Shown here piece by piece: positions 34,974-61,576 of a DNA stretch of 64,000 nucleotides (its first letter is position 1; each line of letters begins with the position of its first letter). Below the pieces are notes generated by a model, which did not search any database, was not told where the DNA came from, and was given only the letters and a program-made list of their open reading frames with translations. The stretch is taken from the IMG/VR virus record IMGVR_UViG_3300023174_000039, positions 124,001-188,000 of that record. One strand, 5' to 3'. The position numbers and the translations under genes are program-made.

Positions 34974-36166
34974 TGAAGATCACAGACGTTATTAAAGAAG
35001 ATGTTGCTCTTGAAGGTGAAGTTGTTCCACTGGGTAAAAAACATCGTGGTGATCTAGACAGCGTAAATTCATGCTCCAAGTGCGGTGGCAAGTTAGAAGG
35101 CGGAACATACATGGGGCAAAGAATCAAAGTATGCCAACCATGTAAGCAAGTTTATCTACCACCTAACAGCGGTATTGATCAACAGGGTAATAAAATTAAA
35201 GAACAAGGTGTGGCGGAAGGCTCATTGCGTGAACAGGCCAGTAAATTATTGTCTGCTGAAGATAAAGATGGCGTGATCACTATCATAGTACAAGCACCCG
35301 ATGGTACCAAGAGATCAGTAGCCGATACCAATCCAAACTATATCAATAGATGGTTAATGAAATATGGACTACGACTTCCTGCCAGTATTACCAGCAAGTT
35401 TGTGGGTGTGACAGAAGAATTCAGACCCACCACAGGGCAAGCCATGGGCATACGCAGTCAGACTGCACAAAAGATGAATCCTGGCAGCAGTAAATTCATT
35501 TGGAAACGACCAAATCAAATCATGGGCAGTCACACTGAAAATGAACTTCGTGCATTGAAATTTAGGTACTCAGCCAAACACAACGTCTGGGGCGGCACAC
35601 AACAGATGTGGAGTCAACTGGAGGGCACACTAAAAGAATTTGCTCCCAGTGCTCCTGGTGGTGCTGATCGCGGAGGTGGCAACTACTTTAAATCTTTGGC
35701 CCAGGCCTGGTATTATAATGGCGTACACGACTTTGATCTACAAGGTGGTGTCAAGACTCAACAAGACGTGGAACGCTTGCTACAACGTGGTATTGTATGT
35801 CCTGATGGTGTCACACGCAAGTTTGGAATAGATTACAATTCAGGTTTTAACGGTGTCGTGATATCCAGCGATGATTACTATGAACATTCTGATCATGGCA
35901 AACGACCTGGTACAATGATAGATGTTCGCACCGGGCGGCCCTGGGGACCATATGATTATATGGAATTCTCTGAAGATGATTTGGACGAAGATGTAGAAGA
36001 AGGCATCCGTGTGCCAGCACAGCAGATCTTGGGCACAAAAAACCGTGCGCAGTCAGCTTACTATCCCACCAATGTCAAGCCCAAGGTGCCTAAACTAGAC
36101 ACTCCCCTGACAGACAAGGAACTGGCAAGACTCTCACAGTTGGCCGGTGTCAACACAAATAAATAA
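34973..36166 (+). CDS. modular putative internal-head polyprotein (Zn ribbon plus several modules)
   Basis: MKITDVIKE start; CSKC...CQPC; linkers QGVAEG, GVTEE and LKEFAP. Confidence 0.65.
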   Translation: MKITDVIKEDVALEGEVVPLGKKHRGDLDSVNSCSKCGGKLEGGTYMGQRIKVCQPCKQVYLPPNSGIDQQGNKIKEQGVAEGSLREQASKLLSAEDKDGVITIIVQAPDGTKRSVADTNPNYINRWLMKYGLRLPASITSKFVGVTEEFRPTTGQAMGIRSQTAQKMNPGSSKFIWKRPNQIMGSHTENELRALKFRYSAKHNVWGGTQQMWSQLEGTLKEFAPSAPGGADRGGGNYFKSLAQAWYYNGVHDFDLQGGVKTQQDVERLLQRGIVCPDGVTRKFGIDYNSGFNGVVISSDDYYEHSDHGKRPGTMIDVRTGRPWGPYDYMEFSEDDLDEDVEEGIRVPAQQILGTKNRAQSAYYPTNVKPKVPKLDTPLTDKELARLSQLAGVNTNK

Positions 36167-36172
36167 CATATC

Positions 36173-37465
36173 ATGAAAATAAACGACGTTGTTACATTAA
36201 TGGAATTTGGTGCTCCCGGCAGTCGCGCACTGGGCACTGGAAACTTTGCTCTGCTACACCGAGCCTATGTGAACAAACGTCCTAGACTCAGTAGATACTT
36301 GCAGTTGGATTTTGGCAACAATCAAATTATCGAACTTGACGATGATGACATTGAAGCAGTGGCCAACTACTATGATACATTGCCCACAGATCAAGATCGA
36401 TACACCTTTGTGTACGATGTCATGAGTCGTGGGGACAAATTTGATGCATTGTTGAAAAAACTGGGTCGCAGATCTGGTGCTCCTGAGCAACCCAGCTTGC
36501 TGGAGCAAAGCGACGACCCTGATCTAAGTCGCAGTGGTGTGCGTAGTGCGGCATTGAGCACAGCTTTGCGCCAGGCCTACGCCAAGTATCCACAAGCACA
36601 GAGTGATATCGAAGCCTTGATCATGCACGACATGGATGTTCAAAAAGACACCAAACAAGAGCTACAGGCACAAGATAAAATAAATCAACGTCAGGACGAT
36701 ATTGATGTGCAACTGCGCAATGTTGCCGGTAAACAAAGCAAAAAGATTTCCAGCTTAGATCAAGAAAATGATGACTTGACAGCAGAACTAGATCGGCTCA
36801 GCAGAGAACTGGATGCCATGCATGCTCAAACAGGTTCTGAACCTGAGCGCAAGAAACGCAGTGACAGCAAGGGCCAGCCTCCAGTGTACAACGTCAATAT
36901 CAAGTCAGCTGATCGTGCTGAAAAATCACAACAACGAGCAGCCGATGCTGAAAAACGCAAACCAGAACCAGCAAAACTCCGTCCAGGTGCCAGCACATTC
37001 AAACCTGTGGGATCTACTTTGCCCGTGACTCCTGCGGTCAAGCCACCTGCACCCACTATCAACGTGATTGATCGTCCAGATCCCAGTGCTGCCATGAGTC
37101 AAGTGGCATTTCAGGCTCCTGCCCCGCAACCAGACATTGCATTGCCTACCAAGCTGGGAGCAGATCTTGATGAGCCTGAAACGGACGCAACTCAACCAGA
37201 TCTGTTTGCAGAACCCAAAGATAACATAACGGTAGATCAGCCCGTGCCGCAAAGCATGTCCTCAATAGATGCTGAACCTGAACCTGAATTGCCGCCCAAC
37301 GTTACTAACCTGGCCACTCGCCGCAACAGAGTTGCAGAACCAGGCAGTGATCAGTATCGTAGAGACACTGTGGACCGAGCAAGAGATCTCATGCAAAAAC
37401 AAATGGCCATGCACGAAGCACAAGACTTGCGCCGCATGCAAAAACTAGCAGGATTACTGCAATGA
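36173..37465 (+). CDS. putative internal-head/core protein, coiled-coil plus Pro-rich
   Basis: MKINDVVTLME start; ends LRRMQKLAGL. Confidence 0.65.
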   Translation: MKINDVVTLMEFGAPGSRALGTGNFALLHRAYVNKRPRLSRYLQLDFGNNQIIELDDDDIEAVANYYDTLPTDQDRYTFVYDVMSRGDKFDALLKKLGRRSGAPEQPSLLEQSDDPDLSRSGVRSAALSTALRQAYAKYPQAQSDIEALIMHDMDVQKDTKQELQAQDKINQRQDDIDVQLRNVAGKQSKKISSLDQENDDLTAELDRLSRELDAMHAQTGSEPERKKRSDSKGQPPVYNVNIKSADRAEKSQQRAADAEKRKPEPAKLRPGASTFKPVGSTLPVTPAVKPPAPTINVIDRPDPSAAMSQVAFQAPAPQPDIALPTKLGADLDEPETDATQPDLFAEPKDNITVDQPVPQSMSSIDAEPEPELPPNVTNLATRRNRVAEPGSDQYRRDTVDRARDLMQKQMAMHEAQDLRRMQKLAGLLQ

Positions 37466-38670
37466 AAATAAATCAGATTATACACGAAGCAGGTACTGGA
37501 TTAGAAATTGATCGTAGCATTCCTGGCCGCACTATTGCCAGGATCAGTGGAGATCTAGCACACAGAACAGGGTCTCTGACAGATAAAAGATTACCTGATC
37601 ACCATCCTGATGATGATTATGTTCCTTGGTCTGGCAAGGTAGGTGCATCAACCCGTGATGACGAAGAAGACACGTTTGATATAGATTACACCGGCGACGA
37701 TGGTGAATTAAACGAATTTGTTACGCCACAAGCAGTGGCACAAGATCCTGGACTAGAACGTGAAAAGGATGTGGATGTTATTTTCTTTGGCTTTATGCCC
37801 CAAGACTTCACTGCCCGAACTGCATGGAAGGCACTAGAAGATGTGTTGCCTAGAGAATATCCTGCTGGTAGTGAACGAGCACAAAATAAAATAGCAGAAG
37901 TTAGCAAGAATAATGGTGCCGTAGTCACAACCAAGCCCCTGAGCATAGCACAGAAACTGGTTAAAGAATTCCAAGCACGTGGCATCAAGTGTAGAATTGA
38001 TGATTCAGGTCTGGAAGAAGACATAACCCGCAGAGGATTCTTGAAGGGTGCAGGAGCAGCCGCTATGGCAGCAGCCGGCGGATCAGCACTAGGCCAGTCC
38101 ATACAAATGCCCACAGTAGACCAAGTTGACAGACAAAAAATGACAATTGTGGTAGATGGTCAAGAGTATCCCTTAGTCATATTATCTCCTACAGACTTTA
38201 GACCACGTGGCGGACAACAATTGCATATAACCTGTGCGCAGATGGGCGAACGCTGTATGGGTAGATATGATGCTGTGTTAGCACAAAACCGAGTGTTTGT
38301 GTTGCCAGGAACAAAGCCACCGGTTATTCCAGCCGGAGTTGACGAAAGTCGCCGAGGCAGCATGCCTGAGCCTGAAAACTTTGACAGTGACTGGGACTAT
38401 GAAGACGCTATGACACGTTGGAGAAACAGCGACTCTGACCAAGACATTGACTACGAGAATATAATAGACGATGAACCTGATGACTGGTTTGACGAATCTC
38501 GAGAGAAAGTAGGCAATATGGATGCTGATGCATTTGATGCTGCCTTGTCACGTATGAAAAAGCTAGCCGGTGCAGGTCCGCTAAAGACCGTGTATGATCC
38601 CAACAAACGTGTGTACCGAAATGTACCGCATGCTGTGCAACCCGCACAACAACCCAAGAAGGCAAGATAA
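37462..38670 (+). CDS. modular putative internal-head polyprotein with an internal Tat signal
   Basis: MKINQIIHE start; internal LEE-DITRRGFLKGAGAAAMAAAG. Confidence 0.65.
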   Translation: MKINQIIHEAGTGLEIDRSIPGRTIARISGDLAHRTGSLTDKRLPDHHPDDDYVPWSGKVGASTRDDEEDTFDIDYTGDDGELNEFVTPQAVAQDPGLEREKDVDVIFFGFMPQDFTARTAWKALEDVLPREYPAGSERAQNKIAEVSKNNGAVVTTKPLSIAQKLVKEFQARGIKCRIDDSGLEEDITRRGFLKGAGAAAMAAAGGSALGQSIQMPTVDQVDRQKMTIVVDGQEYPLVILSPTDFRPRGGQQLHITCAQMGERCMGRYDAVLAQNRVFVLPGTKPPVIPAGVDESRRGSMPEPENFDSDWDYEDAMTRWRNSDSDQDIDYENIIDDEPDDWFDESREKVGNMDADAFDAALSRMKKLAGAGPLKTVYDPNKRVYRNVPHAVQPAQQPKKAR

Positions 38671-40073
38671 TGAAGATAAAAGATTTTCAAACAGAATCAT
38701 GGAGCGAAAAATACAAGAACAGTATCAACTGCTCGCACCCCAAAGGTTTTAGCCAACGTGCGCATTGTGCCGGCAAAAAGAAGCATAATGAATCTGTTGA
38801 AATGGAAATGGTGTGTGAAGACTGTGGCATGTGCAAGTCACATGGTAGTCTCAATGAAATTCGAAAGGGTCAAAAAGACTCAAATGGCTACACACGTTGC
38901 TGGCCTGGCAAGCATGCCGAAGGTACCAAAAAGGGCAAGAATGGCGGCCAAGTTCGCAACTGTGTGCCCAATGAAAGTGTAGCGGAAGCAGATATGAGTC
39001 GCAGAGGTTTCCTTGGTGCGTTGGCAGGTGCAGGTTTAGCTGCCGCAGGATTAGGTGCCAGTGGTAATGCTCAGGCAGGCACCAACGATGCGGCATTTTT
39101 TAACAAAGTAAACGATCTACATCAAAAAACAGCTCAAACAAATCCTCGTTATGCCAAAGAACATGCATCCTTGAACATAGGTATTGTTAGAGGCATGTCT
39201 GGTGCCTCTGCTGAAAACAACAAGCAATGGGCACAAAAAACTGCTCAACTGTTACAAAAATACGGAGTTGCTGTAAACGAAAGTGTAGTAGAAGGTGAAC
39301 AGCGTGTGGATTCACTTGTGACCGACGCACTGAAAATCATGCAGGGTTCAGAAGTAACTGATGCTGTGCAAGCACTAAAGACTGTGCTGGGAGATAGAGA
39401 GTATAACGGTCGCCGTGGTCATTATAATTTCTATATTAGACAAATAATGGATATGTATAACCAGCAAGGCCTAGCAGAAGACTTCAACGGTGAATACGAT
39501 GACGAAGCAGGCATGGTCAAGAATAACCTTCACACTATTATTCGCGTGTTGACACACCTGGGCAAAGATATCGACAACAACGAAAATTTCCCTGAATGGG
39601 TGCAAGAAAAGATTGCCATGATCAAGCAAACCAGTGTTGAAGTTATGAACTACATGATTAGTCAGCACAAAATGGACGTTGATCCTGAAGTAGAAGAAAT
39701 GTACGAAGCCATGGATCAACTGGCAGAAGAAATGGCAGCCAAAAAAGGCATCAGTGCTGACCTAGTATGGGAAAGCTTCGAAGCTCTAGACGATCACATG
39801 CTGTACGAAACAGCCGCCTGGCGCAGAAAAGAAGGCAAGAGCAAAAAGGGCGGCCTAAACGCCAAAGGTGTTGCTAGCTATAGACGCGAGCATCCTGGTT
39901 CAAAACTGCAAACAGCAGTGACCACAAAGCCTAGTAAATTAAAGCCTGGATCAAAAGCAGCCAAGCGTCGCAAGAGTTTCTGCGCACGTATGTCAGGTGT
40001 TAAAGGACCTGCCAAAAAGCCCAACGGTGAACCCACACGCAAGACTCTGGCCTTGCGCAAATGGAACTGCTGA
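38670..40073 (+). CDS. modular putative internal-head polyprotein with an internal Tat signal and basic Cys modules
   Basis: MKIKDFQTE start; VAE-ADMSRRGFLGALAGAGLAAAG...AQA; C-terminal RRKSFCARM...LRKWNC module. Confidence 0.65.
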   Translation: MKIKDFQTESWSEKYKNSINCSHPKGFSQRAHCAGKKKHNESVEMEMVCEDCGMCKSHGSLNEIRKGQKDSNGYTRCWPGKHAEGTKKGKNGGQVRNCVPNESVAEADMSRRGFLGALAGAGLAAAGLGASGNAQAGTNDAAFFNKVNDLHQKTAQTNPRYAKEHASLNIGIVRGMSGASAENNKQWAQKTAQLLQKYGVAVNESVVEGEQRVDSLVTDALKIMQGSEVTDAVQALKTVLGDREYNGRRGHYNFYIRQIMDMYNQQGLAEDFNGEYDDEAGMVKNNLHTIIRVLTHLGKDIDNNENFPEWVQEKIAMIKQTSVEVMNYMISQHKMDVDPEVEEMYEAMDQLAEEMAAKKGISADLVWESFEALDDHMLYETAAWRRKEGKSKKGGLNAKGVASYRREHPGSKLQTAVTTKPSKLKPGSKAAKRRKSFCARMSGVKGPAKKPNGEPTRKTLALRKWNC

Positions 40074-40723
40074 TGCTGGTTGATGAACTGTTTACCACGT
40101 CGTGGCTGACAGAATCCACGGACTCTGCACCTGATCTTGACCGGATCTTGGTAGACCTGTGTGCCATGGTTGTAAAGGGTAAGCAACGCAAGCCCGACTA
40201 CTACGGCATGGTTGCGGCTGCTGTGGTTGATCCCAAAGGCCGTGTGGTCCGGGCTGTGAATCACTTTGATGACGCAACTGACAAACGCATACATGGTGAA
40301 CGTGCTGCCATTCAAGCGTATGAACGCCGGTACGGTCGAGTCACACCAGATTGTACTATAGTAACCACCCTGAGTCCTTGCAGTGAGCGCATGGACGATC
40401 GTTATGGTGAGAGCTGTGAAGATCTTTTAGATGACTATGGTATCACTGATATCTACTGTGGCTATCAAGACCCCACACAAGACTCGGGCTACACAGTTAC
40501 TAGCAATGAAAAAATACAGGAACTGTGCAAGGCCTTTGCTGACACGTTCCTGGGTGATCAACAACTGGATGAACTCAGCTTCTTGGGTAGCCCTTGCACC
40601 AAAGACTGTTCTGGGCATCGCGCAGGATATGATTGGTCAGCACGTAAAGGCAACATCCCGGGCACGAGCCCTTACAGTCCCAGCTTCAACAACGGCGCCA
40701 ATTTAAGAGCCGCTGGCAAATAA
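40073..40723 (+). CDS. Zn-dependent nucleotide deaminase-like protein plus a small C-terminal module
   Basis: HGERAAI...TTLSPC...C deaminase motif; start MLVDELF coupled by TGATG. Confidence 0.75.
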   Translation: MLVDELFTTSWLTESTDSAPDLDRILVDLCAMVVKGKQRKPDYYGMVAAAVVDPKGRVVRAVNHFDDATDKRIHGERAAIQAYERRYGRVTPDCTIVTTLSPCSERMDDRYGESCEDLLDDYGITDIYCGYQDPTQDSGYTVTSNEKIQELCKAFADTFLGDQQLDELSFLGSPCTKDCSGHRAGYDWSARKGNIPGTSPYSPSFNNGANLRAAGK

Positions 40724-41452
40724 TTATTTTTTAGTGTACACAAAGTACAATCTATCATTGGCATCTTTTTTAAATGTATCCAAATGTAAATTGAATTTTT
40801 CTGCCAATTCATTCACAACTTCAAACGACCAAGCAAACACATCCACATAAGGCCCTGTCTTGTGTGTTATTCCCGGGTTGGCTCGCAAAAAGAATTTGCC
40901 ACCCTTGGCCAACAAATCAACACAGTTGGCAATTCTAGCTTCAATTTCGTCTTGTGAATTAAAGTTAATTGATCCCAGTGCCATTACCACATCATATGTG
41001 CCGGGCTTGACTCGGTAATCCAGGATATCAACCATATAATCAGCAGAAGCATTAAATGGATCAATGCCCACAATATTGTGTATCCTCCCTTTAAACGGAT
41101 GATAGCCACATCCAACGTCAAGAACTTGTGTAGGGTTGAGCTTGTTGATTTCTTCTGCCAGCTGCCATCCTGTGTAGCTGAATGTTTCTGTGCGGGGCTT
41201 CCACATTTCTCCAAAGAACCTGTTGAGGTATCTTCGGTCAAAGTCTGCGACGATTTCATAAAGCGTTCCTTTAAATTCTGATGTTAACTGTAGTTCTTGT
41301 TCCACTGTTTCTTTAAACTTGTTAAAGCGAGCAGGAGTCCAAGGTAAGTCTTGTACTACAGTAGTGGTGTCTAACACAAGGTTAGAGTACTTGGGCAAAT
41401 GGAATGATTGTTTGAGATTTTGTTGTAAGAGATTAAAAATTTTGCTATTCAT
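40724..41452 (-). CDS. class I SAM-dependent methyltransferase
   Basis: VLDVGCG, VGIDP and YDVVMALGSINF motifs. Confidence 0.85.
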   Translation of the reverse strand: MNSKIFNLLQQNLKQSFHLPKYSNLVLDTTTVVQDLPWTPARFNKFKETVEQELQLTSEFKGTLYEIVADFDRRYLNRFFGEMWKPRTETFSYTGWQLAEEINKLNPTQVLDVGCGYHPFKGRIHNIVGIDPFNASADYMVDILDYRVKPGTYDVVMALGSINFNSQDEIEARIANCVDLLAKGGKFFLRANPGITHKTGPYVDVFAWSFEVVNELAEKFNLHLDTFKKDANDRLYFVYTKK

Positions 41453-41576
41453 TAAAAAATTTCCGTGTTAGGTAAATAAAAGTACAATACCACTAAAAAT
41501 TTTGTGGCTCTTGTGTTTTTCTAATACATATTTAACTTATGTATCACATACGTCAAAAATTTTCAAAAGGATCAAA

Positions 41577-42554
41577 ATGAAACGATTATTAGCTATATTG
41601 GCACTGGTTCCTATGCTGGTGTTTGCTCAGTCTTGGACCCCGCCCAAGACAGTCACTGCCATAGTGGGAAATGCACCCGGGGCAGGCAACGAAATTGCAT
41701 TTAGAAAAGCCGCAGAGATTGTGACACGCACAACAGGCATTAACTTTGTGATAGAAAACCGCCCGGGTGCAGACAGTGTTATTGCCATGAACATGATGAT
41801 GACCAAGCCCAGTGACGGAAGTGTTGTGGCACTGCCCAGTCACATGAGCACCTATGTCACAAATGATATCTGGGAAAAGAATGTCAAGAAATTTGAATGG
41901 AATAGTTTTGAAGAAGTCTTAAGCTATGGCAAAGCACCATTGGTGGTTGTGAGTGCTGCCCGTAGTTCAATTAACACGCCAGCAGATTTGCTAAAGATGT
42001 TTCAAACAGTTGACAGGCCCATTAATGTGGCCATCGGCGGTGGTGCACATAGAATGGCGTTTGAGTACATGATGGTTAAAACTCGAGCAGATCGCAATCA
42101 AATCAAACATATCAAATTTAATGGACCAGCACAAGCGGTGAGCAGTGTGGCTGCATATGATGGCAAAATTGGCACAGAACTTGGTATTATGCCTGCTGCC
42201 ATTGCTCTGCCCCTGGTGCAAGCAGGCAAGGTCAAATTCATTGGACTAACAGGCACAAAGAAACTACAACAAATACCCACAGTACCTTTGCTAAGTGATG
42301 CTATACCTGGTGTTATGGCACAGGCAGGGTGGAATCTTGTGTTGCCACCCATGACACCGCGTCCCATTGTTGATTGGTATGTGAAAGAATTTGGCCGTGC
42401 ATTAAAGACACAAGAATATCGCCAATGGGCCGAAGACAACTTAATTATAGTAGACGAAAAGGATCACACTCCCGAAGGAGTGCGAGCACACATGGCAGAC
42501 TTGCGCCAGCGATTCTTGCCCATGGCACAGTATATTTCACAAGAAGGCAATTGA
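41577..42554 (+). CDS. Bug/TctC tripartite tricarboxylate transporter substrate-binding protein
   Basis: Signal peptide; PGAGNEI, VIENRPGA, GKVKFIG and LVLPPMTP motifs. Confidence 0.85.
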   Translation: MKRLLAILALVPMLVFAQSWTPPKTVTAIVGNAPGAGNEIAFRKAAEIVTRTTGINFVIENRPGADSVIAMNMMMTKPSDGSVVALPSHMSTYVTNDIWEKNVKKFEWNSFEEVLSYGKAPLVVVSAARSSINTPADLLKMFQTVDRPINVAIGGGAHRMAFEYMMVKTRADRNQIKHIKFNGPAQAVSSVAAYDGKIGTELGIMPAAIALPLVQAGKVKFIGLTGTKKLQQIPTVPLLSDAIPGVMAQAGWNLVLPPMTPRPIVDWYVKEFGRALKTQEYRQWAEDNLIIVDEKDHTPEGVRAHMADLRQRFLPMAQYISQEGN

Positions 42555-42555
42555 C

Positions 42556-43895: not shown

Positions 43896-43903
43896 ATATT
43901 TTG

Positions 43904-44988: not shown

Positions 44989-45612
44989 ATGTCACAGATT
45001 GTATGGATGTTTAGCCTACTGCCTGACAGCATTTTTGTCATGTTGACCTATGCGATATTTGCACTAGGCGTACTGTTGTACATTGCAAGCAAGCTGGTCA
45101 AGTGGATTCCCATGATGATGCAATACCGCATGCCTGCTGAACTGGTGGGTGTGGTGTGCCTGTGTATTGGCGCTTATTTCTTTGGTTGGCGCGGTAACGA
45201 AGAGAAATGGCTGGCTAGAATTAAAGAGCTAGAACAAAAAGTTCAAATTGCTGAAGCCCGGAGTCGTGAAGTCAACACCGTAATTGAAACCAAAGTTGTT
45301 ACCAAGATCAAAGTTGTAAAGGAAACAGTATATGCAAACCGAGAAATCATTCGAGAAGTTGCTGGCGCTCAGCTTGACAGTCAGTGTACTTTGCCTAAGT
45401 CTAGCGTCGTGCTCCACGACAGTGCCAGTCGTAATGAAGTGGCCCGAGGTCCCGGCAGTGTTGATGGAACCCCCTCAGGCATTGAAGCCCATAGACTCCT
45501 CGAAACCGTTGTCGACAACTACGGAAGCTGTAACGAAAACATCGAAAAACTAAAAGCCTGGCAGGAATGGTATCGAACACAAAAACAAATATTTGAAAGT
45601 GTTGCCAAATGA
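44989..45612 (+). CDS. inner-membrane spanin (Rz-like)
   Basis: N-terminal TM segments, coiled coil, CTLP...NYGSC...LKAWQEW; lies in the lysis cassette. Confidence 0.75.
   Translation: MSQIVWMFSLLPDSIFVMLTYAIFALGVLLYIASKLVKWIPMMMQYRMPAELVGVVCLCIGAYFFGWRGNEEKWLARIKELEQKVQIAEARSREVNTVIETKVVTKIKVVKETVYANREIIREVAGAQLDSQCTLPKSSVVLHDSASRNEVARGPGSVDGTPSGIEAHRLLETVVDNYGSCNENIEKLKAWQEWYRTQKQIFESVAK
45332..45553 (+). CDS. embedded outer-membrane spanin lipoprotein (Rz1-like)
   Basis: +1 frame inside the Rz-like gene; AAGGA RBS; lipobox LASC; Pro-rich mature part. Confidence 0.75.
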   Translation: MQTEKSFEKLLALSLTVSVLCLSLASCSTTVPVVMKWPEVPAVLMEPPQALKPIDSSKPLSTTTEAVTKTSKN

Positions 45613-46801: not shown

Positions 46802-46802
46802 A

Positions 46803-51928: not shown

Positions 51929-51938
51929 ATACAACACT

Positions 51939-52106
51939 ATGGCAAAAATACACGAAGAAGTAGTTGTGATCAAACTCTCAAAATTGGTCAAAGACAGCGA
52001 TCCTGGTACTGATATTGCAACCGCTGACATTGTGGCTGCATTGCAAAGCGTGGCTGAAGAATTGGCAGGTGTGGGCGTGATTGTAGAAGCAGAACGAGCA
52101 CAATGA
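51939..52106 (+). CDS. small late protein (55 aa)
   Basis: Begins MAKIHEEVVVIKLSKLVKD; TAAATA upstream; ATGA overlap downstream. Confidence 0.7.
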   Translation: MAKIHEEVVVIKLSKLVKDSDPGTDIATADIVAALQSVAEELAGVGVIVEAERAQ

Positions 52107-52471: not shown

Positions 52472-52485
52472 TTTTAAGGATTATC

Positions 52486-52923: not shown

Positions 52924-52938
52924 TACTAAATACTAGCT

Positions 52939-54738
52939 ATGAAACAGCTAGTAATCATGCCCGGGGGATTCCACCCCTTTCATGCGGGACACGCCGCTCT
53001 TTATCAATCTGCCGTTGAAGCATTTCCCGGTGCTGATGTATATGTGGCTGCCACCAACGATACCAGCACACGCCCTTTTCCGTTTCCTGTCAAAGAAAAA
53101 CTAGCACAATTGGCCGGGGTTCCCAAAGGCCGATTCATGCAGGTTAAATCGCCTTTTCGAGCAGAAGAAATCACAGCACCTTACGATCCCAACAACACAC
53201 AGTTGATCTTTGTGCGTTCAGATAAAGACGCAGGATCACAACCTCGTCCAGGTGGCAACAAAAAAGACGGATCACCTGCATACCTACAACCATATGATGA
53301 TGCCAGTGATCTGCCCATGAGTCAACATGCTTACATGGCCTACTTGCCTACTGTGGAGTTCGGACCTGGCATGACATCAGCCACAGAGATTCGCAGTGCA
53401 TGGCCCCGGCTAAATGAAAAACGCAAAACAGCTCTGGTCATGAGCCTGTATCCCAAGGCACAGACTAATCCCAAGCTGGCAGCCACAGTGGTTAAACTGT
53501 TGGACACAGCTATGGGCGCAGAACTAAATGAGTTTGCGTCTGCAGGCATTGACGACGGTAATGATAGTGACGATGAGAAAACATATCTGTTACAGCTGGC
53601 AGAAGATCTCAGTGAAGCCATGTACGGTCCCAATAAAAACAAACAAGCAATAGAAAATATAATGGCCAAGATCCGTGCTGTGGGAGGCGATGTAAAGATA
53701 ACATGGAATCCTGACGGCACATTTAATGTGGCAATGTATCATCCGGTACACTTCAAGCAAGGCTATCTAATTAGACTGGTTGGCCGGGGCAATCAAGGCC
53801 TGGACGAAAATACAGCGCCAAACCCACGTGTGAATTTAACCCCTAACTTTCCCAACTACGCTACCTTAATTGGAGAGTTTGTTGGCATTAAAAAGAATCG
53901 TGCGCTGTTTCGTATCATTGCCGCAGAGCTCCGGCCAGGACAAGGTGAAACTGAAAAGATCTTTCGAGCCATGAGTACCAACACTCCCATTGGCATTGAG
54001 ATTGGCAAAGTAAAAAATCGTGCTGTAGTAGAAAATGTAGGCAAAGAATTTATATTGTATATCAATGGTAAACCTGCTGCCAAGTATGTGGACCAACAAC
54101 AGGCCATACTAGACATGGCCGCGGTAAGAAAGAAATATCCTGCCGCTAGACTAGAACTCAAACACGAAGTGTGTGACATGCAAACTGTGAAACAAATCAA
54201 CGAAGGCGGCAGCATACTAGAAGCACTCAAGCCGGATGCGTTTGCTGTCTTGCAAAAAGCCAAACAAAACATAAAACAAAATCGTCAGCAAGAGCAACAG
54301 GCCAAACAACAGATTGAACCGGAACGTCAGCAAGAAGTTGATCAATGGGCACAAGACTTCCGGGCCAACAGTGCAAAATTAGCAGGACGTCAGCTGAAAC
54401 AAAGATTTGCCGCGCCTCCACCGGCTCCAATCCCTGTGGCTAAACCGGGTGAGGGATATTACGCATTAAAAGATAGATTGGCACAGTTAGATATTGCCAA
54501 ACAAAAGTTTGAAGAATTTAACAAATTGATTGCGTCAATTAAAAAGAAATATCCTTTAGTGGCAGACACGCTAGATCAACTGGAAAACAGTTTGTTACAA
54601 GATGTCAAGGACGGTGCCGCAGATAATTACGCATCTCTACTGACTAAATTAAACAAGTACAAAAATGCGTTGACAACCAGGTTTCCTGGCATAGTCAAAG
54701 AAGACCCCGATTACATCGAAGAAGGTCGCAAAATTTAA
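52939..54738 (+). CDS. HxGH cytidylyl/adenylyltransferase-like domain fused to several modules
   Basis: PGGFHPFHAGH and SATEIR; linkers LNEFAS, QGLDE, VVE and INE. Confidence 0.75.
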   Translation: MKQLVIMPGGFHPFHAGHAALYQSAVEAFPGADVYVAATNDTSTRPFPFPVKEKLAQLAGVPKGRFMQVKSPFRAEEITAPYDPNNTQLIFVRSDKDAGSQPRPGGNKKDGSPAYLQPYDDASDLPMSQHAYMAYLPTVEFGPGMTSATEIRSAWPRLNEKRKTALVMSLYPKAQTNPKLAATVVKLLDTAMGAELNEFASAGIDDGNDSDDEKTYLLQLAEDLSEAMYGPNKNKQAIENIMAKIRAVGGDVKITWNPDGTFNVAMYHPVHFKQGYLIRLVGRGNQGLDENTAPNPRVNLTPNFPNYATLIGEFVGIKKNRALFRIIAAELRPGQGETEKIFRAMSTNTPIGIEIGKVKNRAVVENVGKEFILYINGKPAAKYVDQQQAILDMAAVRKKYPAARLELKHEVCDMQTVKQINEGGSILEALKPDAFAVLQKAKQNIKQNRQQEQQAKQQIEPERQQEVDQWAQDFRANSAKLAGRQLKQRFAAPPPAPIPVAKPGEGYYALKDRLAQLDIAKQKFEEFNKLIASIKKKYPLVADTLDQLENSLLQDVKDGAADNYASLLTKLNKYKNALTTRFPGIVKEDPDYIEEGRKI

Positions 54739-54789
54739 CGCTGTCTGCTATACTCTGTAAATACTAGCATATTTTTAACGGAGAACCCA

Positions 54790-55677
54790 ATGGCTGAACA
54801 GCAAATACAAGTCAATATTGACTACCTAAGAACTACCCGAGTGCATATCTGTATGCCATGTTACGGCGGGCAGTTAACTGAATCCACATTCATGAGCTTT
54901 ATCAAATGGGCCAACACATGCCGCCAACTAGGCATCGACTGGACTGTGGAAACAATGACCAATGAAAGTTTGATTTCACGTGCTCGTAACACACTCACAG
55001 CCAAGTTCTTGAACACAGAAGGTTCCACTCACCTGATGTTTATTGATGCTGACATTGGCTGGGAACCTTGGCATTTGTTGGCATTGTTAAATGCCGACAA
55101 AGATGTCATTGGTGGCTTGTACCCAATGAAATCCCTGCCAGTCAAATGGTGTGTGAATGGCATTCCTGGTGCAGACGAAAATGATCCCAGCGGCCTGGTA
55201 GAAGTCACCAAAACAGGCACAGGTTTCTTGTTGATGAAACGCCATGTGTTTGAAAAGCTCAATCAGCACCCTGCTGTGAAGCCATTTACCAACGACATTG
55301 GACTTGACCCTGCACTCAACGTACACATGAAAACCTACTTTGACACAGCCGTGCGCGAAGGACGTTACTACTCTGAAGACTGGACATTCTGTGAAAACTG
55401 GCGTGATCTAGGCGGACAGATCTTTGTGGACAAACGTGTGTTGCTCAAGCACACAGGTACCTATGTGTTTGACTTTGGTACACACGAAAAACTCTATCAC
55501 GATCTTGCAGAGATGTACAACAACGGTGGGTTGCCCACAACTATGCCACAATCTTTGCCAGCACCTGTTGTTGACCCAACTCCGCATCAGCTGGCAGCGG
55601 CACCTGCACCAGTGGCAGAAGCCAAAGTTATGGCAACAAGCAAGGCCAAATCCAAGAAAACATCTAAAGCAGCCTGA
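54790..55677 (+). CDS. GT-A-fold glycosyltransferase-like protein
   Basis: ISRARN, LMFIDADI (DxD) and SEDWTFC motifs. Confidence 0.75.
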   Translation: MAEQQIQVNIDYLRTTRVHICMPCYGGQLTESTFMSFIKWANTCRQLGIDWTVETMTNESLISRARNTLTAKFLNTEGSTHLMFIDADIGWEPWHLLALLNADKDVIGGLYPMKSLPVKWCVNGIPGADENDPSGLVEVTKTGTGFLLMKRHVFEKLNQHPAVKPFTNDIGLDPALNVHMKTYFDTAVREGRYYSEDWTFCENWRDLGGQIFVDKRVLLKHTGTYVFDFGTHEKLYHDLAEMYNNGGLPTTMPQSLPAPVVDPTPHQLAAAPAPVAEAKVMATSKAKSKKTSKAA

Positions 55678-55694
55678 CGGTAAATATAGTTCGT

Positions 55695-58600
55695 ATGAAC
55701 ATCAACGAACTAGATTCCTATAACCTTGCCGATGCTGTTAAGTTTAATGAAGAACTTAACCCACGCATCTGGCAAGGTTCTCGCATGCGCCCAGAAGTGC
55801 GCCGAAAATTACTGGCCATTGCTCGAGATTTTAAACAAAGTCTAGGACTCAGTGACCTAGAAGTCAAAGACATCACACTCAGCGGAAGCAACGCTGGTTA
55901 CACATATACCCCGCACTCGGATATTGACCTACACCTTGTGGTAGATGTTCCACAAGCAGAAACTGACGAAGTGTATCGTGAGTTGTTCAATGCCAAAAAG
56001 TACCAATATAATGATGAGCACAACTTGGCCATTGGCGGCTATCCTGTTGAGTTGTATGTTCAGCCGGCCAATCAAACACATCACTCACAAGGAATCTATT
56101 CAGTATTAAACAACGACTGGACTGCTATTCCTCGCAAGCGAGAAAGCACAGTGAATGACGGTGCTGTAAAAAGCAAGTACGAACTCATGAAGCATCGTAT
56201 TAACTCTGCCATCAACAGCGGCAACATCAAACAGTTGACCAAAACTGCCGCACGTATCAAACAAATGCGGCAAGCAGGTCTAGACAAAAACGGTGAACTG
56301 GGTCCTGAGAATCTGGCCTACAAAATGTTGCGTACACAAGGGCTGATTGAAAAGTTGTACACTGCTCGCACCGCGGCCAAAGATCGGCTGCTGAGTCTAC
56401 AAGAGCAACCTGTGGCAGAACACGTAACGTACGGTTTTGCAGAAGATGCAACCATATCTCCTTACGGTGTTAGTCCCACGACACAGATGTTTCTAAATGA
56501 AACAGGTGACAGTGAACAAACTGTACATGATTTTATTTCTCATACCGCTGAACAACTGGGCATTGAAAACATGCCGCATATTGAATTGCACACAGACCCT
56601 GAATGGTCAGAACGTGAACACAGCTTTGGTCGTTACACTCCTGAAACACATACCTTGGAAGTGAACTTGGCCAATCGTCACATCATGGACATCCTGCGTA
56701 CCACAGCACACGAACTGGTACATTGCAGACAACATGAACTATCTCCACTGCCCAACGAAGCAGGAGAAACTGGCAGTCGTTGGGAAAACGAAGCACATGC
56801 CAAAGCTGGGGTGATCATGCGTGACTATGCTGATGCCAATCCTGAAAAGTTTGGCGAACATGCCCTGGCAGAAGCATCAGGATATATTCCCACTAGGGCG
56901 CAGGTTCGAGATCCACGTTTCAGTACTGCACTTACTGTGGATGTGCATCCAGGGCAAACAGGCAAGGAAGCCAACAAGATGGCTTTGCAAACAGATGCAC
57001 AAGGTCGTCCTGCCTTGTTGACGAAGGGGCTGGCAAATCAACTGCACGAAGAGTTTGCACAGTTTGATGAGTCAACTGCGCTATTTGAAATCAAAATGAC
57101 CGGCAAGAACCTGCGAGCCGAAGCTGCCAAAACAGGTGCCATTGCCGGCATGGAATTTGAAATGATTGTGCCCAACATGGAGGGCGACCCTGACGATGAT
57201 CAGGAAATGGAGCCTGATTGGGAATATGATGAAAGTGTTATTAGTATTGATGATGCATGTAACTTCTTTGAAAACGGTGAGGGCAACACCAGTGGTGACA
57301 TTAGACGCCTGCGTGAACGCATGCAAAACTATTATTACGATTGGTTAGATGAGCAGTTTGACAGTCGCTGGGACGGCGATGAGTTAGAGTTTATTTACAA
57401 CTACATTAAAGAAAATGCCAGCGCAGAAGAAATTGCAGAAATATTGGGCACAGAACCCAACGAAGATGGTGAGTATCCTGACCCAGGTAAACAAGATTAT
57501 CTTGATGCCGCAAACAAAATTAGCGAACAAGGCTACGACAACCAATGGTATAGTCAAGCACGTGAAGACGCACAAGAAGATTATAACAGAAATGCTGACC
57601 AAGAACGAGAATGGCTAGCAGACCAAGACATCAACACCATGAAGGATGTGATGGACACGTTTGGCAATGTCAATTGGCCTTACTACTATAATTCCAATGT
57701 CGGTGGTGATAGAAGTATAGATGATGTGGCTAATGATTTCCAAGACGCAATAGGCCGTGATGTTCAAGCTAGCACTAGATATCACTCAGGGAGTGTGGAT
57801 AGACCCAGCCCAAGTTCACATCATTATGTGGTCGAGCCCGACGGCAGTTTAGATGGCGACAACTACGGGGACCGAGGCCTGGAGTTTGTGAGCCCACCAT
57901 TGCCCATTGATGTAATCCTTAATGATCTAAGCAAAGTCAAACGCTGGGCAGACAGCTATGGTTGCTACACTAACGATTCAACTGGATTGCACATCAATAT
58001 TTCAGTGCCTGAATACAACAGAGACAAGCTGGACTTTGTAAAGTTGGCTATCCTGATGGGCGACGAACATGTGTCCGACAGCTTTGGACGATTAGGTGCA
58101 TACTACGCAAAAAGTGCTATGGCTGCAATTCGCGACAATGTTCGCAGTCGCCCTGAGGCCGTGACAGATGCCCTGGAAAAAATGCGAACACACATGAATA
58201 CAGCGGCATCAAAAGCTATTCATGCCGGTGTGACTCAGAAATTTACCAGTATCAACGTCAAAGACGGCCACATTGAATTTCGCTCACCTGGCGGTGATTG
58301 GTTGGGCGAGAACTTTGACAAGATTGAAAACACCCTGTTGCGTTTCACAGTGGCCATGAGTGCTGCCTTAAACCCAGAAATGTATCGCGAAGAATACCTG
58401 AAGAAACTGTACAAGTTATTGACTCCGGAAGGACAGAAAGACGAGTACGGAGACATGATCGAAGAGTTCTCCAAGTACATGGTATCACTGCAAGGCAGTG
58501 GTGCAGAAGCGAGTGGCAAGTTGAGCAAAGAAACACAGCAGGCCATCAAGGACTTTAGAACAGCGGCCAGCAAAGAACTAAAACAAAAAAATCTGGCCAA

Positions 58601-60572
58601 CAAGCTGAAAAAGGGCAACACTGCTGGTCAAAAGTACTGGTGGAAAGTTTCTAATCCTGGAAACAGTAATGCTGGTATAGAAGTTGTGGCCACAACCAAA
58701 GAGGAAGCAATTGAAAAAGCCACGGGTGAAGATGGGTATCCAAGCTGGGCTAACTATCTAAGTTCCCTGGTTGCAAAGCCGTTGAGTCCTTATTATGAAA
58801 AATCCAAACCTTCCCAACAAACTGCCAGATATGAAATCTACAACAAACAAACTGGTAACTCGGTAGAGACTGCTGATGGCATTACCAACGATGCAGACGC
58901 ACTAGTTCGCCTGAATGATTATATTGAACACGGTCCGCATGCACTACAACGCGGGCAAGCCTCACGTATGTTTGGTATTCGCACCACCAATGGGGTTGAG
59001 ATTGTGGACATAGACATACCCATGGCCCAAGGTCGTGCTGCCACAAGTCCAACCGGAAAATGGAAAATAACAGACGGATTGGGTCGTTACCTATATGTGT
59101 TCCGTCCTGCAGAGAACACCCGATCAGCAGCCAACGAGTTAGCCGCATTATGGGCAAGAGAAAACAACTTTGATGGCAACTATCAAGTTGAGCCAGTAGA
59201 AGATACTGCGCAAACTGGCACACAGGATCAACAACAAGGCGGCTTGATTGACGTTGTGCCAGGATCTACAAATGATCTAGCACGTCAGCGAGCAACACCT
59301 GGTGCATTTACAGGTGCATGGAAGGTTCTAGATGCCGACGGCAACGAGCTGTATAGATTCTCAGGCGTAGGCAACAATCAAAGTGATGCTAACCGTGTAG
59401 CAGTACAATGGATGCAGAACAATGGTTATGATCACGGCACAGAAATGTCTGTAGTGCCTGTCATGAGCGAAAGCATTGCGGAAGGTGCAGATAAAAAATA
59501 CACAATTAAAAAATCTTACACCATGTCCAAGGCTGGTGTAGAAAAATCTGTATGGCACATTATGGACGGTGACTTTGTGGTGGACGTTACTGACTTGAGA
59601 CGCGATGCCAAGTACTACGCTGACAAGTGGAATGCTGCCGAGAAGGAATCATCAGACGCATCTCAAAATCTACACAAGCAAGGCATGGCAGAAGGTCTGA
59701 ATGAATTTGCACCTAGCAGCCAAGGTGGAGGTAATTCAGGACGCTGGTACACTGATGACGAGCTTGCAGATATCATTGGTGATGATTGGTTTGAAGACTT
59801 TGATGTCAGCCACGATGGGTTTAATATTGATACACATGGCGAAAAAGCCAAGCAAAATCTAGTGGGTTATGCCAACTCCTGGTTCGATGATCGAGGTTAT
59901 AATGTCAACGTAATGGGCGTGGAACACAATGATGTTGACCACGATTTAAAATGGTACATTGTTGGTAGTTTCCACAATCCCCGCTTTGCCAACGAAGGTG
60001 TGACGGAAGCCAGTTTATCAACCATGCGAGACTTTTTTGCCGGTGATGAAAAGGCACGTGATCCATACGAAATTACCAAACAACGGTTACACTTTAGTAA
60101 AGATCCCAAAACTGCTGCAACCAATAGAAAAGAATTTAGAAGCAAAGAAGAGTATGAACAATGGGCAAAACAAAATAAAATAGTAAATGCACCTAAGGTT
60201 AACGAGGCTCCAGAATTTTTCTCTATGCCATTGCGCATGAGCGAATATCGTGGTAAACATCATCCTGCAACCGAAGAGCCGTACGATGCCAAGTTCAAGT
60301 TCTCGGGTGATTTAAAAGATCGTGTACACAGTCTATTAGATGCAGGAACCAAGCCCAAGCTGTTACAAGTCAATCCGCGTCATTTGTTGGCCACACAAGA
60401 CTGGCTGAGCAATCAAGGCGGCGGCAAGCCACCATTTGCCACAATGAAACAACATCCTGTGGTGCTACAAAAAAACAACAAGTTGTACATTCTCGACGGC
60501 CATCATAGATCAGCAGATGCGCTCAACTCTGGCTCACCAATTGAAGTATACCTATTCCAGGATGAATTATGA
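55695..60572 (+). CDS. 1625-aa polyvalent protein: Pol-beta nucleotidyltransferase, HExxH metallopeptidase, putative amidoligase, repeats and ParB-like domain
   Basis: GSNAGY...SDIDLH; AHELVH; GMEFE...EPDGSL...LEFVSPP...STGLHINIS...IEFRSPGG; ILDGHHR. Confidence 0.8.
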   Translation: MNINELDSYNLADAVKFNEELNPRIWQGSRMRPEVRRKLLAIARDFKQSLGLSDLEVKDITLSGSNAGYTYTPHSDIDLHLVVDVPQAETDEVYRELFNAKKYQYNDEHNLAIGGYPVELYVQPANQTHHSQGIYSVLNNDWTAIPRKRESTVNDGAVKSKYELMKHRINSAINSGNIKQLTKTAARIKQMRQAGLDKNGELGPENLAYKMLRTQGLIEKLYTARTAAKDRLLSLQEQPVAEHVTYGFAEDATISPYGVSPTTQMFLNETGDSEQTVHDFISHTAEQLGIENMPHIELHTDPEWSEREHSFGRYTPETHTLEVNLANRHIMDILRTTAHELVHCRQHELSPLPNEAGETGSRWENEAHAKAGVIMRDYADANPEKFGEHALAEASGYIPTRAQVRDPRFSTALTVDVHPGQTGKEANKMALQTDAQGRPALLTKGLANQLHEEFAQFDESTALFEIKMTGKNLRAEAAKTGAIAGMEFEMIVPNMEGDPDDDQEMEPDWEYDESVISIDDACNFFENGEGNTSGDIRRLRERMQNYYYDWLDEQFDSRWDGDELEFIYNYIKENASAEEIAEILGTEPNEDGEYPDPGKQDYLDAANKISEQGYDNQWYSQAREDAQEDYNRNADQEREWLADQDINTMKDVMDTFGNVNWPYYYNSNVGGDRSIDDVANDFQDAIGRDVQASTRYHSGSVDRPSPSSHHYVVEPDGSLDGDNYGDRGLEFVSPPLPIDVILNDLSKVKRWADSYGCYTNDSTGLHINISVPEYNRDKLDFVKLAILMGDEHVSDSFGRLGAYYAKSAMAAIRDNVRSRPEAVTDALEKMRTHMNTAASKAIHAGVTQKFTSINVKDGHIEFRSPGGDWLGENFDKIENTLLRFTVAMSAALNPEMYREEYLKKLYKLLTPEGQKDEYGDMIEEFSKYMVSLQGSGAEASGKLSKETQQAIKDFRTAASKELKQKNLANKLKKGNTAGQKYWWKVSNPGNSNAGIEVVATTKEEAIEKATGEDGYPSWANYLSSLVAKPLSPYYEKSKPSQQTARYEIYNKQTGNSVETADGITNDADALVRLNDYIEHGPHALQRGQASRMFGIRTTNGVEIVDIDIPMAQGRAATSPTGKWKITDGLGRYLYVFRPAENTRSAANELAALWARENNFDGNYQVEPVEDTAQTGTQDQQQGGLIDVVPGSTNDLARQRATPGAFTGAWKVLDADGNELYRFSGVGNNQSDANRVAVQWMQNNGYDHGTEMSVVPVMSESIAEGADKKYTIKKSYTMSKAGVEKSVWHIMDGDFVVDVTDLRRDAKYYADKWNAAEKESSDASQNLHKQGMAEGLNEFAPSSQGGGNSGRWYTDDELADIIGDDWFEDFDVSHDGFNIDTHGEKAKQNLVGYANSWFDDRGYNVNVMGVEHNDVDHDLKWYIVGSFHNPRFANEGVTEASLSTMRDFFAGDEKARDPYEITKQRLHFSKDPKTAATNRKEFRSKEEYEQWAKQNKIVNAPKVNEAPEFFSMPLRMSEYRGKHHPATEEPYDAKFKFSGDLKDRVHSLLDAGTKPKLLQVNPRHLLATQDWLSNQGGGKPPFATMKQHPVVLQKNNKLYILDGHHRSADALNSGSPIEVYLFQDEL

Positions 60573-61576
60573 GAGCACATGAATTTTTATCCGAAGGTCA
60601 AGAAGAATTTAACCAAGAAATAATGCAACACGGTTTTGAGTTCAGTCAGAAAATTGCCGGTGTTACATATAAAGTAATAAACGATCTTGGTGTACTCTTG
60701 GTCACAGCCTTAGATCCAGCAGGAGAACAAATCGGACATGCAAGTTTTTGGAAACATCAAACTCGTTCAGGACTAGAAAGTCTAAGTACCGAAGTTGACG
60801 ACAAATGGCAAGGCAAAGGCATTGCCGCAAACATGTATGCCGTTGTACGTATGCTGGGCGCAAACATAAATCCATCATTATTCCAAAGCAAGCAAGGAAA
60901 AAACATGTGGAAGAAGTGGCAACAACAAGGCGACGTTGCACATCTAAAACGCATGAATGCAAAAAACAAAGACCAAGATATAGCAGAAACAATAAACTCC
61001 GCCATACTCAATAAGAGATTCCGACACAAACAAGTAATTGGCAATTATACTTACAGAGCATCAGTTGAAATGTTTATGGGTGAGCCGTTATTGTCAATCA
61101 AAGCCTATGACGGAGATAGGGAAATAGGTCATATTCTGTTTGAAATAATTGTAAGATCTCCAGGAGGGAAGAGAGATCCATCCGCGGATTACTTAGAAAG
61201 CGGCGGCACTGAGGTTGATCCAGCATATAGAAACAAAGGTGTGGCATCCACAATGTATGCGTATGCCAAAATGTTAGGCAATGATATTCGACCCAGTTAT
61301 AATCAAACAAGTCAAGGCCAAGCAATGTGGGCGGCCTGGAACAAGACAGGTGATGCAAAGCATTTGATCGGTACTGCCGCGGAATCCACTATGGCGGAAA
61401 ACTTTGCTGATGGCAAAGTAAAAGGCAAAAGCCGCCCTGGGCGTGTGAAACGGTCAGGTGCCAGTTGTGATGGCAGTGTGACAGATCTACGTGCTCGTGC
61501 AAAGAATGCATCAGGTGAAAAGGCCAAAATGTATCACTGGTGTGCCAACATGAAGTCTGGTCGCAAAAAAAGTTAA
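60569..61576 (+). CDS. tandem GNAT acetyltransferase domains plus a basic C-terminal module
   Basis: EVDDKWQGKGIA and EVDPAYRNKGVA acetyl-CoA motifs; MRAHEFLSE start. Confidence 0.8.
   Translation: MRAHEFLSEGQEEFNQEIMQHGFEFSQKIAGVTYKVINDLGVLLVTALDPAGEQIGHASFWKHQTRSGLESLSTEVDDKWQGKGIAANMYAVVRMLGANINPSLFQSKQGKNMWKKWQQQGDVAHLKRMNAKNKDQDIAETINSAILNKRFRHKQVIGNYTYRASVEMFMGEPLLSIKAYDGDREIGHILFEIIVRSPGGKRDPSADYLESGGTEVDPAYRNKGVASTMYAYAKMLGNDIRPSYNQTSQGQAMWAAWNKTGDAKHLIGTAAESTMAENFADGKVKGKSRPGRVKRSGASCDGSVTDLRARAKNASGEKAKMYHWCANMKSGRKKS

Follow-up and report, generated by a model that had tools for sequence, protein, structure and literature searches.

Frame-locked linkers between polyprotein modules of a T4-related jumbo phage as probable protease sites and short-homology recombination joints

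In this study, we have analysed the short linkers that separate the modules of several long proteins encoded in a 64,000-nucleotide stretch of DNA (hereafter the window) of the IMG/VR virus record IMGVR_UViG_3300023174_000039. The window corresponds to C1:124001-188000 of this 331,654-bp record, which is 95% complete, and positions given without the prefix C1 are those of the window. The phage is a T4-related jumbo phage from freshwater, and the DNA of the window is also present in lake and freshwater metagenomes. The linkers lie in two clusters of open reading frames (ORFs), and the genes of both clusters, the linkers and the virion-protein homologues next to the first cluster are all on the + strand. 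The first cluster, an accessory island, consists of four modular genes at 34973-36166, 36173-37465, 37462-38670 and 38670-40073, encoding proteins of 397, 430, 402 and 467 residues. The genes directly upstream of it (33805..34973) encode homologues of two virion structural proteins (phrog_12928 and phrog_13138; PA5oct gp189 and gp188); the note on PA5oct gp189 reads ESI-MS/MS (electrospray ionisation tandem mass spectrometry), i.e. the protein was detected in virions. The gene order in PA5oct is PhoH, gp189, gp188, DnaJ, ClpA; relative to it, the first cluster is an insertion lying after the gp188 homologue and before ClpA. The second cluster (52939..61576) comes after ClpA, has a looser virion-gene context than the first, and comprises four ORFs of 599, 295, 1625 and 335 residues. 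The N-terminus of the modular 599-residue ORF is cytidylyltransferase-like, and the ORF contains the junction ELNE/FASAG (a slash marks the module boundary here and below); the 295-residue ORF comes next. The 1625-residue ORF (55695-60572) carries an NTP_transf_2 / phrog_36119 domain at residues 11-234, Amidoligase_2 at residues 675-868, a ParBc_2 match below the cut-off at residues about 1581-1614 and an HExxH motif recognised by eye only, together with two repeat modules and three linkers. Judged by these several unrelated enzymatic domains in one polypeptide, it is a polyvalent-type protein. The last ORF of the cluster (60569-61576, 335 residues) has two GNAT domains.

A preliminary description of this DNA had listed seven similar inter-module linkers, and all seven strings are exact at 35204, 38973, 39465, 59469, 59679, 59994 and 61388, each in frame within one of four long ORFs. 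The linker peptide follows the pattern [Q/E]-[G/S]-[V/I/L/M]-[A/T]-E-[G/A/D]. Linker 1 (QGVAEG, CAAGGTGTGGCGGAAGGC, 35204..35221) separates a Zn-ribbon module (residues 1-83) from the remainder of the 397-residue protein, and is the exact consensus 18-mer of the clade. In the 467-residue protein, linker 2 (ESVAEA, GAAAGTGTAGCGGAAGCA, 38973..38990) closes the N-terminal ..CVPN module; the ends of high-scoring segment pairs (HSPs) with related proteins cluster there at residues 103-107, and the ..CVPN family has 12 distinct downstream partners. Further along the same protein we found an eighth linker that the earlier list lacked (ESVVEG, GAAAGTGTAGTAGAAGGT, 39279..39296), with five HSP starts at residue 206, and then linker 3 (QGLAED, CAAGGCCTAGCAGAAGAC, 39465..39482), which closes the ..DMYNQ module, with HSP ends at residue 270 and HSP starts at residues 257-268. 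The three linkers of the 1625-residue protein are linker 4 (ESIAEG, GAAAGCATTGCGGAAGGT, 59469..59486), which closes its ..VVPVMS module and where matches in relatives stop at residues 1257-1267; linker 5 (QGMAEG, CAAGGCATGGCAGAAGGT, 59679..59696), followed by LNE/FAP, with HSP starts at residue 1333; and linker 6 (EGVTEA, GAAGGTGTGACGGAAGCC, 59994..60011), which closes the promiscuous ..RFAN module (residues 1334-1438), with HSP ends at residues 1438-1445 and differing downstream modules. Junction 7 (TMAE/N, ACTATGGCGGAAAAC, 61388..61402), in the 335-residue protein, precedes a basic C-terminal tail module, NFADGK... (61403-61573). This tail caps unrelated polyproteins, and a hydrophobic-x-E/N junction stands before it in 26 distinct proteins of relatives. 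The tail of the 467-residue protein, a DUF6321 domain related to the NFADGK tail, occurs widely in cyanomyoviruses and pelagiphages and carries the annotation 'structural protein' in phage S-P4.

The likeness of these linkers extends to their DNA. Among the 400 ORFs of the genome we counted eight occurrences of the strict peptide pattern, whereas shuffling gave an expectation of 0.5 and no more than 4 in any of 200 shuffles. This comparison is partly circular, as the pattern was set after the sites were seen; six of the eight occurrences fall in three ORFs of the window. The heptamer GCGGAAG is found nine times in the window for 3.55 expected. The recurrence of NCG-GAA codon pairs in the linkers, pointed out previously, is correct and codon bias does not explain it: the linker Ala codon is GCG in four cases out of six, for a frequency of 6.7% genome-wide and 5.7% before GAA (P about 2e-4), and the sole linker Thr codon is ACG, which makes up 4.6% of the Thr codons of the genome. 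With peptides and genome codon usage held fixed, the mutual likeness of the six 18-mers of the window is 0.693 versus 0.619 after back-translation (P = 0.0036), and they match the clade consensus at 14.17 versus 12.52 of 18 bases (P = 1.5e-4). Linker 1 is the only exact copy of the consensus in the window and most of the other linkers are decayed copies, so that the system is clearest in relatives. Throughout the genome, NCG codons are the rarest in each codon family checked, CpG is depleted (observed/expected 0.67), and TpG (1.44) and CpA (1.38) are in excess; in this background the common GCA and ACA linker variants look like decayed GCG and ACG. The CpG, TpG and CpA values are as methyl-cytosine deamination would produce.

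All the relatives that we compared are metagenome contigs. The consensus linker DNA of the clade, identical to linker 1, is composed of the codons CAA (Gln), GGT (Gly), GTG (Val), GCG (Ala), GAA (Glu) and GGC (Gly), which we number as in a protease site from P4 (the first Gly) through P1 (Glu) to P1' (the last Gly). Codons were counted in 132 related IMG/VR loci fetched by protein similarity alone, with sites defined by the peptide only and one site taken for each of 123 upstream families; the locus set was later enlarged with loci picked by the exact 18-mer, from which we used the control motif alone. Gln was encoded by CAA in 91/93 sites (background 69%), Gly at P4 by GGT in 87/104 (38%), Val at P3 by GTG in 73/91 (32%), Ala at P2 by GCG in 88/112, that is 79% (7%), and Gly at P1' by GGC in 58/74 (36%). 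The proposal that linkers are conserved at synonymous positions beyond the codon bias of the genome therefore holds, the Val, Ala and both Gly codons being far from background usage. The control junction peptide xNEFAx, which is also conserved, shows ordinary synonymous codon variation. Allowing up to two mismatches, the 18-mer has 202 copies in 2.18 Mb of related loci, where about 0.09 would be expected by chance, and all 202 are on the coding strand and in one reading frame, with none on the opposite strand. These copies span 122 contexts with unrelated flanks, and conservation drops sharply at the edges of the word; in IMG/VR as a whole the exact word is present at least 120 times. It is kept across phages in which identity between orthologous modules is no higher than 40-60%. 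Five whole relative genomes of ~350 kb contain 0-4 copies each, all inside one ~10-kb cluster. A word confined to one cluster per genome is not a genome-wide signal, and a Chi-like or other genome-wide oriented motif is ruled out on this ground.

The central claim of the preliminary description was that modules are gained, lost or swapped in frame at the linkers, and six cassette indels, the closest orthologue of the 1625-residue protein and independent contigs all support it. Module order is not fixed across the relatives: a single upstream module can be paired with up to 12 different downstream modules, and the upstream modules with varied successors include those ending in ..CVPNES[VI]xE, ..DMYGQQG[VLM]AE, ..RFANEGVAEG and ..VPIMTEGVAEG, as well as a Zn-ribbon module ending in ..NKTNEQGVAEG. 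The Zn-ribbon module, which in the window stands before 35204, recurs internally in longer proteins of relatives with differing partners. When the proteins of the window were compared with those of relatives by BLAST, 83 of 394 internal similarity breakpoints lay within 8 residues of a linker, for 21.7 expected. At least six pairs of relatives show a cassette indel, in which one has the arrangement A-linker-B and the other A-linker-X-linker-B, and in which the nucleotide identity changes partner inside the 18-mer. These indels measure 54 residues (short form L101, long form L098), 184 (L012, L029; a site homologous to linker 5 of the window at 59679), 133 (L103, L101), 171 (L091, L097), 69 (L111, L090) and 107 residues (L021, L111). 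Some of the linkers at these indels are chimeric, and the point of the switch varies within the word. Breakpoints of indels between orthologues can thus be placed inside the linker at nucleotide resolution, which is where the preliminary description had proposed to look for them.

The closest orthologue of the 1625-residue protein (L010, 64% identity) is colinear with it up to residue 1336, at linker 5. From there, ~250 unrelated residues replace residues 1337-1501, and 89% identity resumes directly after the orthologue's own QGVAEG. The corresponding junction in the window, KVNE/APEFF at 60193-60210, opens the ParB-like C-terminal module (residues 1502-1625), while L010 reads QGVAEG/IEFF there; the consensus word at this place in the window was lost or was never there. 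Contigs from other studies break at the same linkers: X6 rec29 and X4 rec19/20 lose similarity at 59486/59488, at linker 4, X6 rec31 does so at 59694, in linker 5, and in X4 rec21 219 different bases stand in place of 59996-60225, at linker 6. Upstream of linker 4, the segment 58800-59468 (residues about 1040-1258) consists of two tandem repeat modules ending in ..VEPVE or ..VVPVM. L010 holds an extra repeat copy within its residues 1133-1400, to which residues 1065-1246 of the window protein match twice, which indicates that module number also varies by tandem duplication.

The linker peptide has the form of a site for the type of prohead protease that this phage encodes. Profile searches of the genome found a gp21-type protease (Peptidase_S77, PF03420, E = 1.3e-23) at C1:319159-319602, in a gene spanning C1:319105-319737, along with a T4-type portal (PF07230, E = 2e-106) and a Gp23-type capsid protein (PF07068, E = 1e-97) with 65% identity to the capsid proteins of PA5oct-like jumbo phages; the T4-type head gene block also encodes an acidic core protein and a scaffold protein. 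In T4, gp21 cleaves behind the Glu of L/I-x-E (PMC9026906); for the proteases of phiKZ and SPN3US the corresponding motifs are S/A/G-x-E and A-x-E (PMC5694885). All seven linkers of the initial list read [V/I/L/M]-[A/T]-E, which fits the gp21 motif. The decayed linkers of relatives mostly keep V, I, L or M at P3, accept A, T, D, E, N or Q at P2, and in most cases have Glu at P1 (28 of 41 in the largest family). The N-termini of the modular proteins have a similar form. In T4, the internal proteins carry an N-terminal capsid-targeting sequence (CTS) of 10-19 residues that brings about entry into the prohead and is then removed (PMC5694885, PMC9026906), and the N-terminus of both IPIII and IPII is MKTYQEFIAE. 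The proteins of the first cluster begin, in gene order, with MKITDVIKE, MKINDVVTLME, MKINQIIHE and MKIKDFQTE. The first and third of these are CTS-like, as are MRAHEFLSE of the 335-residue ORF and MRAREFTTE of an ORF at 45609, and linker-bearing ORFs of relatives start with MRAQEFIIE, MRAQEFITE, MIIDDLFEA or MNLNDLFTEE. As far as sequence goes, these short N-termini ending in a cleavage motif resemble the T4 CTS, and the likeness is one of resemblance only. The 397-, 430- and 402-residue proteins have a motif [K/R/Q]-x-LAG-[L/V/A] at or close to the C-terminus (36133-36166, 37433-37465 and about 38551-38580; ..SQLAGVNTNK, ..MQKLAGLLQ, ..MKKLAGAG..), and the scaffold protein ends with ..DLKRLAGL (C1:320820-320844). 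Possibly this motif acts as another signal, for attachment to the prohead core.

Indirect evidence that the linkers are cut comes from signal peptides for twin-arginine translocation (Tat), which require a free N-terminus and which here sit directly after linkers. Within the 467-residue protein, a Tat-type signal peptide (MSRRGFLGALAGAGLAAAGLGASGNAQA, Pfam TAT_signal) at 38991..39077 directly follows linker 2 (ESVAE/ADMSRRGFLG..), and in the 402-residue protein another (Pfam TAT_signal, E = 1.2e-4) at 38020..38097 comes after GLEE/DITRRGFLKG... In relatives, among them L082, L270 and L055, internal Tat-like motifs are placed directly after hydrophobic-x-Glu in 13 of 13 cases, and two more follow a CTS-like N-terminus. 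This placement suggests that head-packaged modules are exported by the host Tat system to the periplasm after ejection. Altogether, the linker looks like a prohead-protease cleavage site, and we infer that the modular proteins are packaged in the head, cleaved and ejected.

Based on these observations, we consider it probable that the linkers, as protease sites, at the same time provide the joints for short-homology recombination of a polyprotein cargo packaged in the head. In the mechanism that we propose, a T4-CTS-like N-terminus would carry each polyprotein into the prohead, where cleavage by the gp21-type protease behind every linker Glu ([V/I/L/M]-x-E) would set the modules free, some of them bearing a newly exposed Tat signal. 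Since each released module would function by itself, joining modules in frame at a linker would always yield a viable product. At the DNA level, the 18-base word would supply a short stretch of identity through which general recombination could delete, insert or swap modules in frame, within one genome or between co-infecting relatives, with a RecA/UvsX-family homologue encoded in the genome at hand and replication slippage as a further possible source of such events. We infer that short homology, and not a dedicated enzyme, drives the exchange, this being the simplest account. Several observations weigh against this picture. The linkers of the window other than the consensus copy have just 7-9 identical consecutive bases in common, which would make exchange between them inefficient in this genome. 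As many as 311 of the 394 similarity breakpoints fall away from linkers, and the independent contigs have many further loose ends outside them. Linkers found in several contexts are no nearer to the consensus than others (3.04 versus 2.6-2.7 mismatches), and in the synonymous comparison of linkers with their flanks in stable orthologous contexts, 15 of 18 pairs are one non-linker domain site (ESLTED). These data do not separate homogenisation by recombination from selection acting directly on the word as DNA or RNA; ongoing exchange, such selection or recognition by an enzyme could each keep the word uniform. Comparison with cultured phages gave no match for 34973-40723 by megablast and none for the C-terminal modules of the 1625-residue protein by tblastn. 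Finally, an AlphaFold2 model of the 467-residue protein (alignment A2) is poor, with a mean predicted local distance difference test score (pLDDT) of 56 and a predicted template modelling score of 0.29; the linkers lie in low-confidence stretches, as does half the protein, and the model gives weak support for a beads-on-a-string layout.

Other explanations can be offered for the same data. The linker might be kept just as a protease site or spacer, with random illegitimate recombination and selection producing the mosaic and the likeness of the DNA arising as a by-product. The many breakpoints elsewhere are in line with this, as are the persistence, for the most part, of hydrophobic-x-Glu where the DNA word has decayed and the junctions without the word (NKIKE/A, VNE/A, xxE/NFADGK). 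However, a constraint on protein alone does not account for the use of the rarest Ala codon in 79% of independent contexts, for two Gly positions that favour different Gly codons while the control motif varies synonymously as normal, or for breakpoints and chimeric linkers inside the word. This explanation is already contradicted by the codon counts, and we regard it as improbable. Conservation at synonymous positions on the coding strand would also be expected of a word that acts in the mRNA, either as an internal Shine-Dalgarno-like pause for folding (AGGUG, GGAAGG; the word contains AGGTG) or by binding a regulator, but a pause needs neither the full 18 bases nor a rare GCG codon, the unrelated flanks leave no conserved RNA structure, and a location at recombination breakpoints is not predicted; such a role seems very improbable. 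Even less credible is that the shuffling is an artefact of assembly, in which chimeric contigs were joined at a repeat. Although the relatives are all from metagenomes, the same architectures are found in contigs from different samples (L005, L006, L008, L009, L016 and L022), the codon bias of the linkers is independent of assembly, and de Bruijn assemblers commonly use k-mers longer than 18 bases.

More serious are two explanations that keep part of the proposed mechanism. One is that the word is the recognition site of a phage-encoded nuclease or recombination factor, for instance a homing-type endonuclease or a nuclease module of the polyproteins themselves, and that the clusters form a programmed system of in-frame cassette exchange; if so, this system would diversify the effectors that are packed in the head and ejected, including the Tat-exported periplasmic modules. 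The razor-sharp edges of conservation, the sameness of the word across phages whose modules have diverged to 40-60% identity and the position-specific synonymous choice (GGT at P4, GGC at P1') do resemble a recognition sequence, and the genome has homing endonuclease genes (e.g. 29429-29950) and the weak ParB-like nuclease module at the C-terminus of the 1625-residue protein. On the other hand, searches of the 95% complete genome matched neither a tyrosine recombinase (PF00589) nor a serine recombinase (PF00239), the word lacks palindromic symmetry, the crossovers in chimeric linkers occur at differing positions of the word, as homology-guided exchange predicts, and we saw no gene travelling with the linker clusters, though no systematic search was made. 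We therefore judge a dedicated enzyme, and with it a programmed exchange, to be unlikely. The other explanation is that the linker is an uncut flexible spacer in polyvalent proteins, as in the virion RNA polymerase (vRNAP) of phage N4, in which case the role of the DNA as a joint could stand and there would be no proteolytic release. Some polyvalent proteins are indeed packaged unprocessed (PMC5512222), cleavage in this clade is a prediction, and the structural model of the 467-residue protein is uninformative on this point. The peptide nevertheless fits the gp21 motif with Glu mostly retained at P1, Tat signals stand directly after the linkers in all 13 internal cases, and the CTS-like N-termini themselves terminate in hydrophobic-x-E. 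We regard an uncut spacer as unlikely, though less so than a dedicated enzyme.

The reading that we prefer, in which protease-site linkers also serve as recombination joints, combines known parts: the CTS and gp21 processing of T4-type phages, polyvalent proteins (PMC5512222) and the boundary-sequence model of phage evolution (PMC3029335). The internal proteins IPI-III and Alt of T4 are similar in depending on a T4-type protease gene, in MKTYQEFIAE-like N-termini that end in hydrophobic-x-Glu, in putative L/I-x-E sites and in being diverse, fast-evolving cargo encoded by accessory genes. A T4 internal protein differs in being a single module with one N-terminal propeptide, unlike the ORFs described here, which hold up to at least five modules with internal sites; also, packaging and cleavage are known in T4 and predicted here. 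We know of no conservation of the T4 cleavage site at the DNA level. The 1625-residue protein, with its nucleotidyltransferase, amidoligase and weak ParB-like domains, corresponds to the polyvalent proteins of phages and conjugative elements described by Iyer et al. (2017; PMC5512222); it is encoded by a phage, and extensive architectural mosaicism is shared as well. The virion-protein homologues adjoin the first cluster and this ORF lies in the second. Where polyvalent proteins are processed, embedded metallopeptidase domains are predicted to do it (PMC5512222), and the main text of that study does not contain the word 'linker', nor did we find there a conserved linker, a protease-site junction or a DNA joint. 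The phages phiKZ, 201phi2-1 and SPN3US are jumbo phages too; they have numerous proteins inside the head, whose precursors contain several sites and are cleaved behind the Glu of a three-residue motif. Their lineage is a different one (PA5oct-like phages have the capsid proteins most similar to the one described here), and their sites remove propeptides, whereas the sites described here separate interchangeable modules. To our knowledge, no DNA word shared between the cleavage sites of these phages has been reported.

At the DNA level, a close precedent is the modular theory (Susskind and Botstein; Clark et al., 2001; as cited in PMC3029335), in which conserved boundary DNA at junctions allows homologous reassortment; the classical boundary sequences are intergenic in lambdoid phages and missing from most mosaic joints. 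The linker word is similar in being a short conserved DNA sequence at module junctions, with breakpoints that map inside it, and differs in being intragenic, locked to one reading frame and apparently also a functional peptide. Shufflons and integron cassettes likewise have short repeated sites that flank interchangeable coding segments, and a shufflon alters the C-terminus of one protein in frame. In contrast to these, the copies of the word are all direct repeats without dyad symmetry, and the variation lies between genomes rather than in switching within one. A site-specific system of the shufflon or integron type was rejected, as there is no tyrosine or serine recombinase and there are no inverted sites (202/202 copies on one strand). 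Searching the literature for QGVAEG and related concepts, we came across no account of linkers of this kind, nor of the combination seen here, a DNA word inside a gene that is locked to one reading frame and apparently serves as a protease site too.

Several other genes of the phage deserve mention. A homing-endonuclease-like ORF (29429-29950; phrog_655, HNH type) comes right after the clamp-loader gene (28168-29091). Between PhoH and the virion-protein homologues, a 502-residue ORF (32296-33804) without Pfam or PHROG match carries the repeat ..SAVDRKPAPVDVG.. three times at its N-terminus, and its body is fibre-like and rich in Gly, Asn and Thr. The ORF at 41502-42554 encodes a periplasmic solute-binding protein of the TctC/Bug family (PF03401, E = 6.6e-18) with a signal-like N-terminus, an auxiliary gene which may hint at a betaproteobacterial host. 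Outside the window, C1:274994-289804 is a single ORF of 4,936 residues on the minus strand.

In conclusion, our results bear on a long debate about the mosaicism of phages, in which conserved boundary sequences are set against random illegitimate joins and in which clear boundary sequences are rare (PMC3029335). The linkers described here are an unusually clean case, with one frame-locked 18-base word at more than 100 unrelated junctions and breakpoints inside it, and this makes the boundary-sequence hypothesis directly testable. Should the protease free each module, any in-frame join would be viable, and the cargo of the head could be recombined like beads on a string. The linker together with a CTS-like N-terminus could also serve the engineering of phage-delivered proteins in laboratory systems. 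We know of no described case in which proteins delivered by a phage and processed are exported by the host to the periplasm; if cleavage and the Tat signals are as we propose, these phages would deliver processed proteins that the host itself exports to its periplasm.

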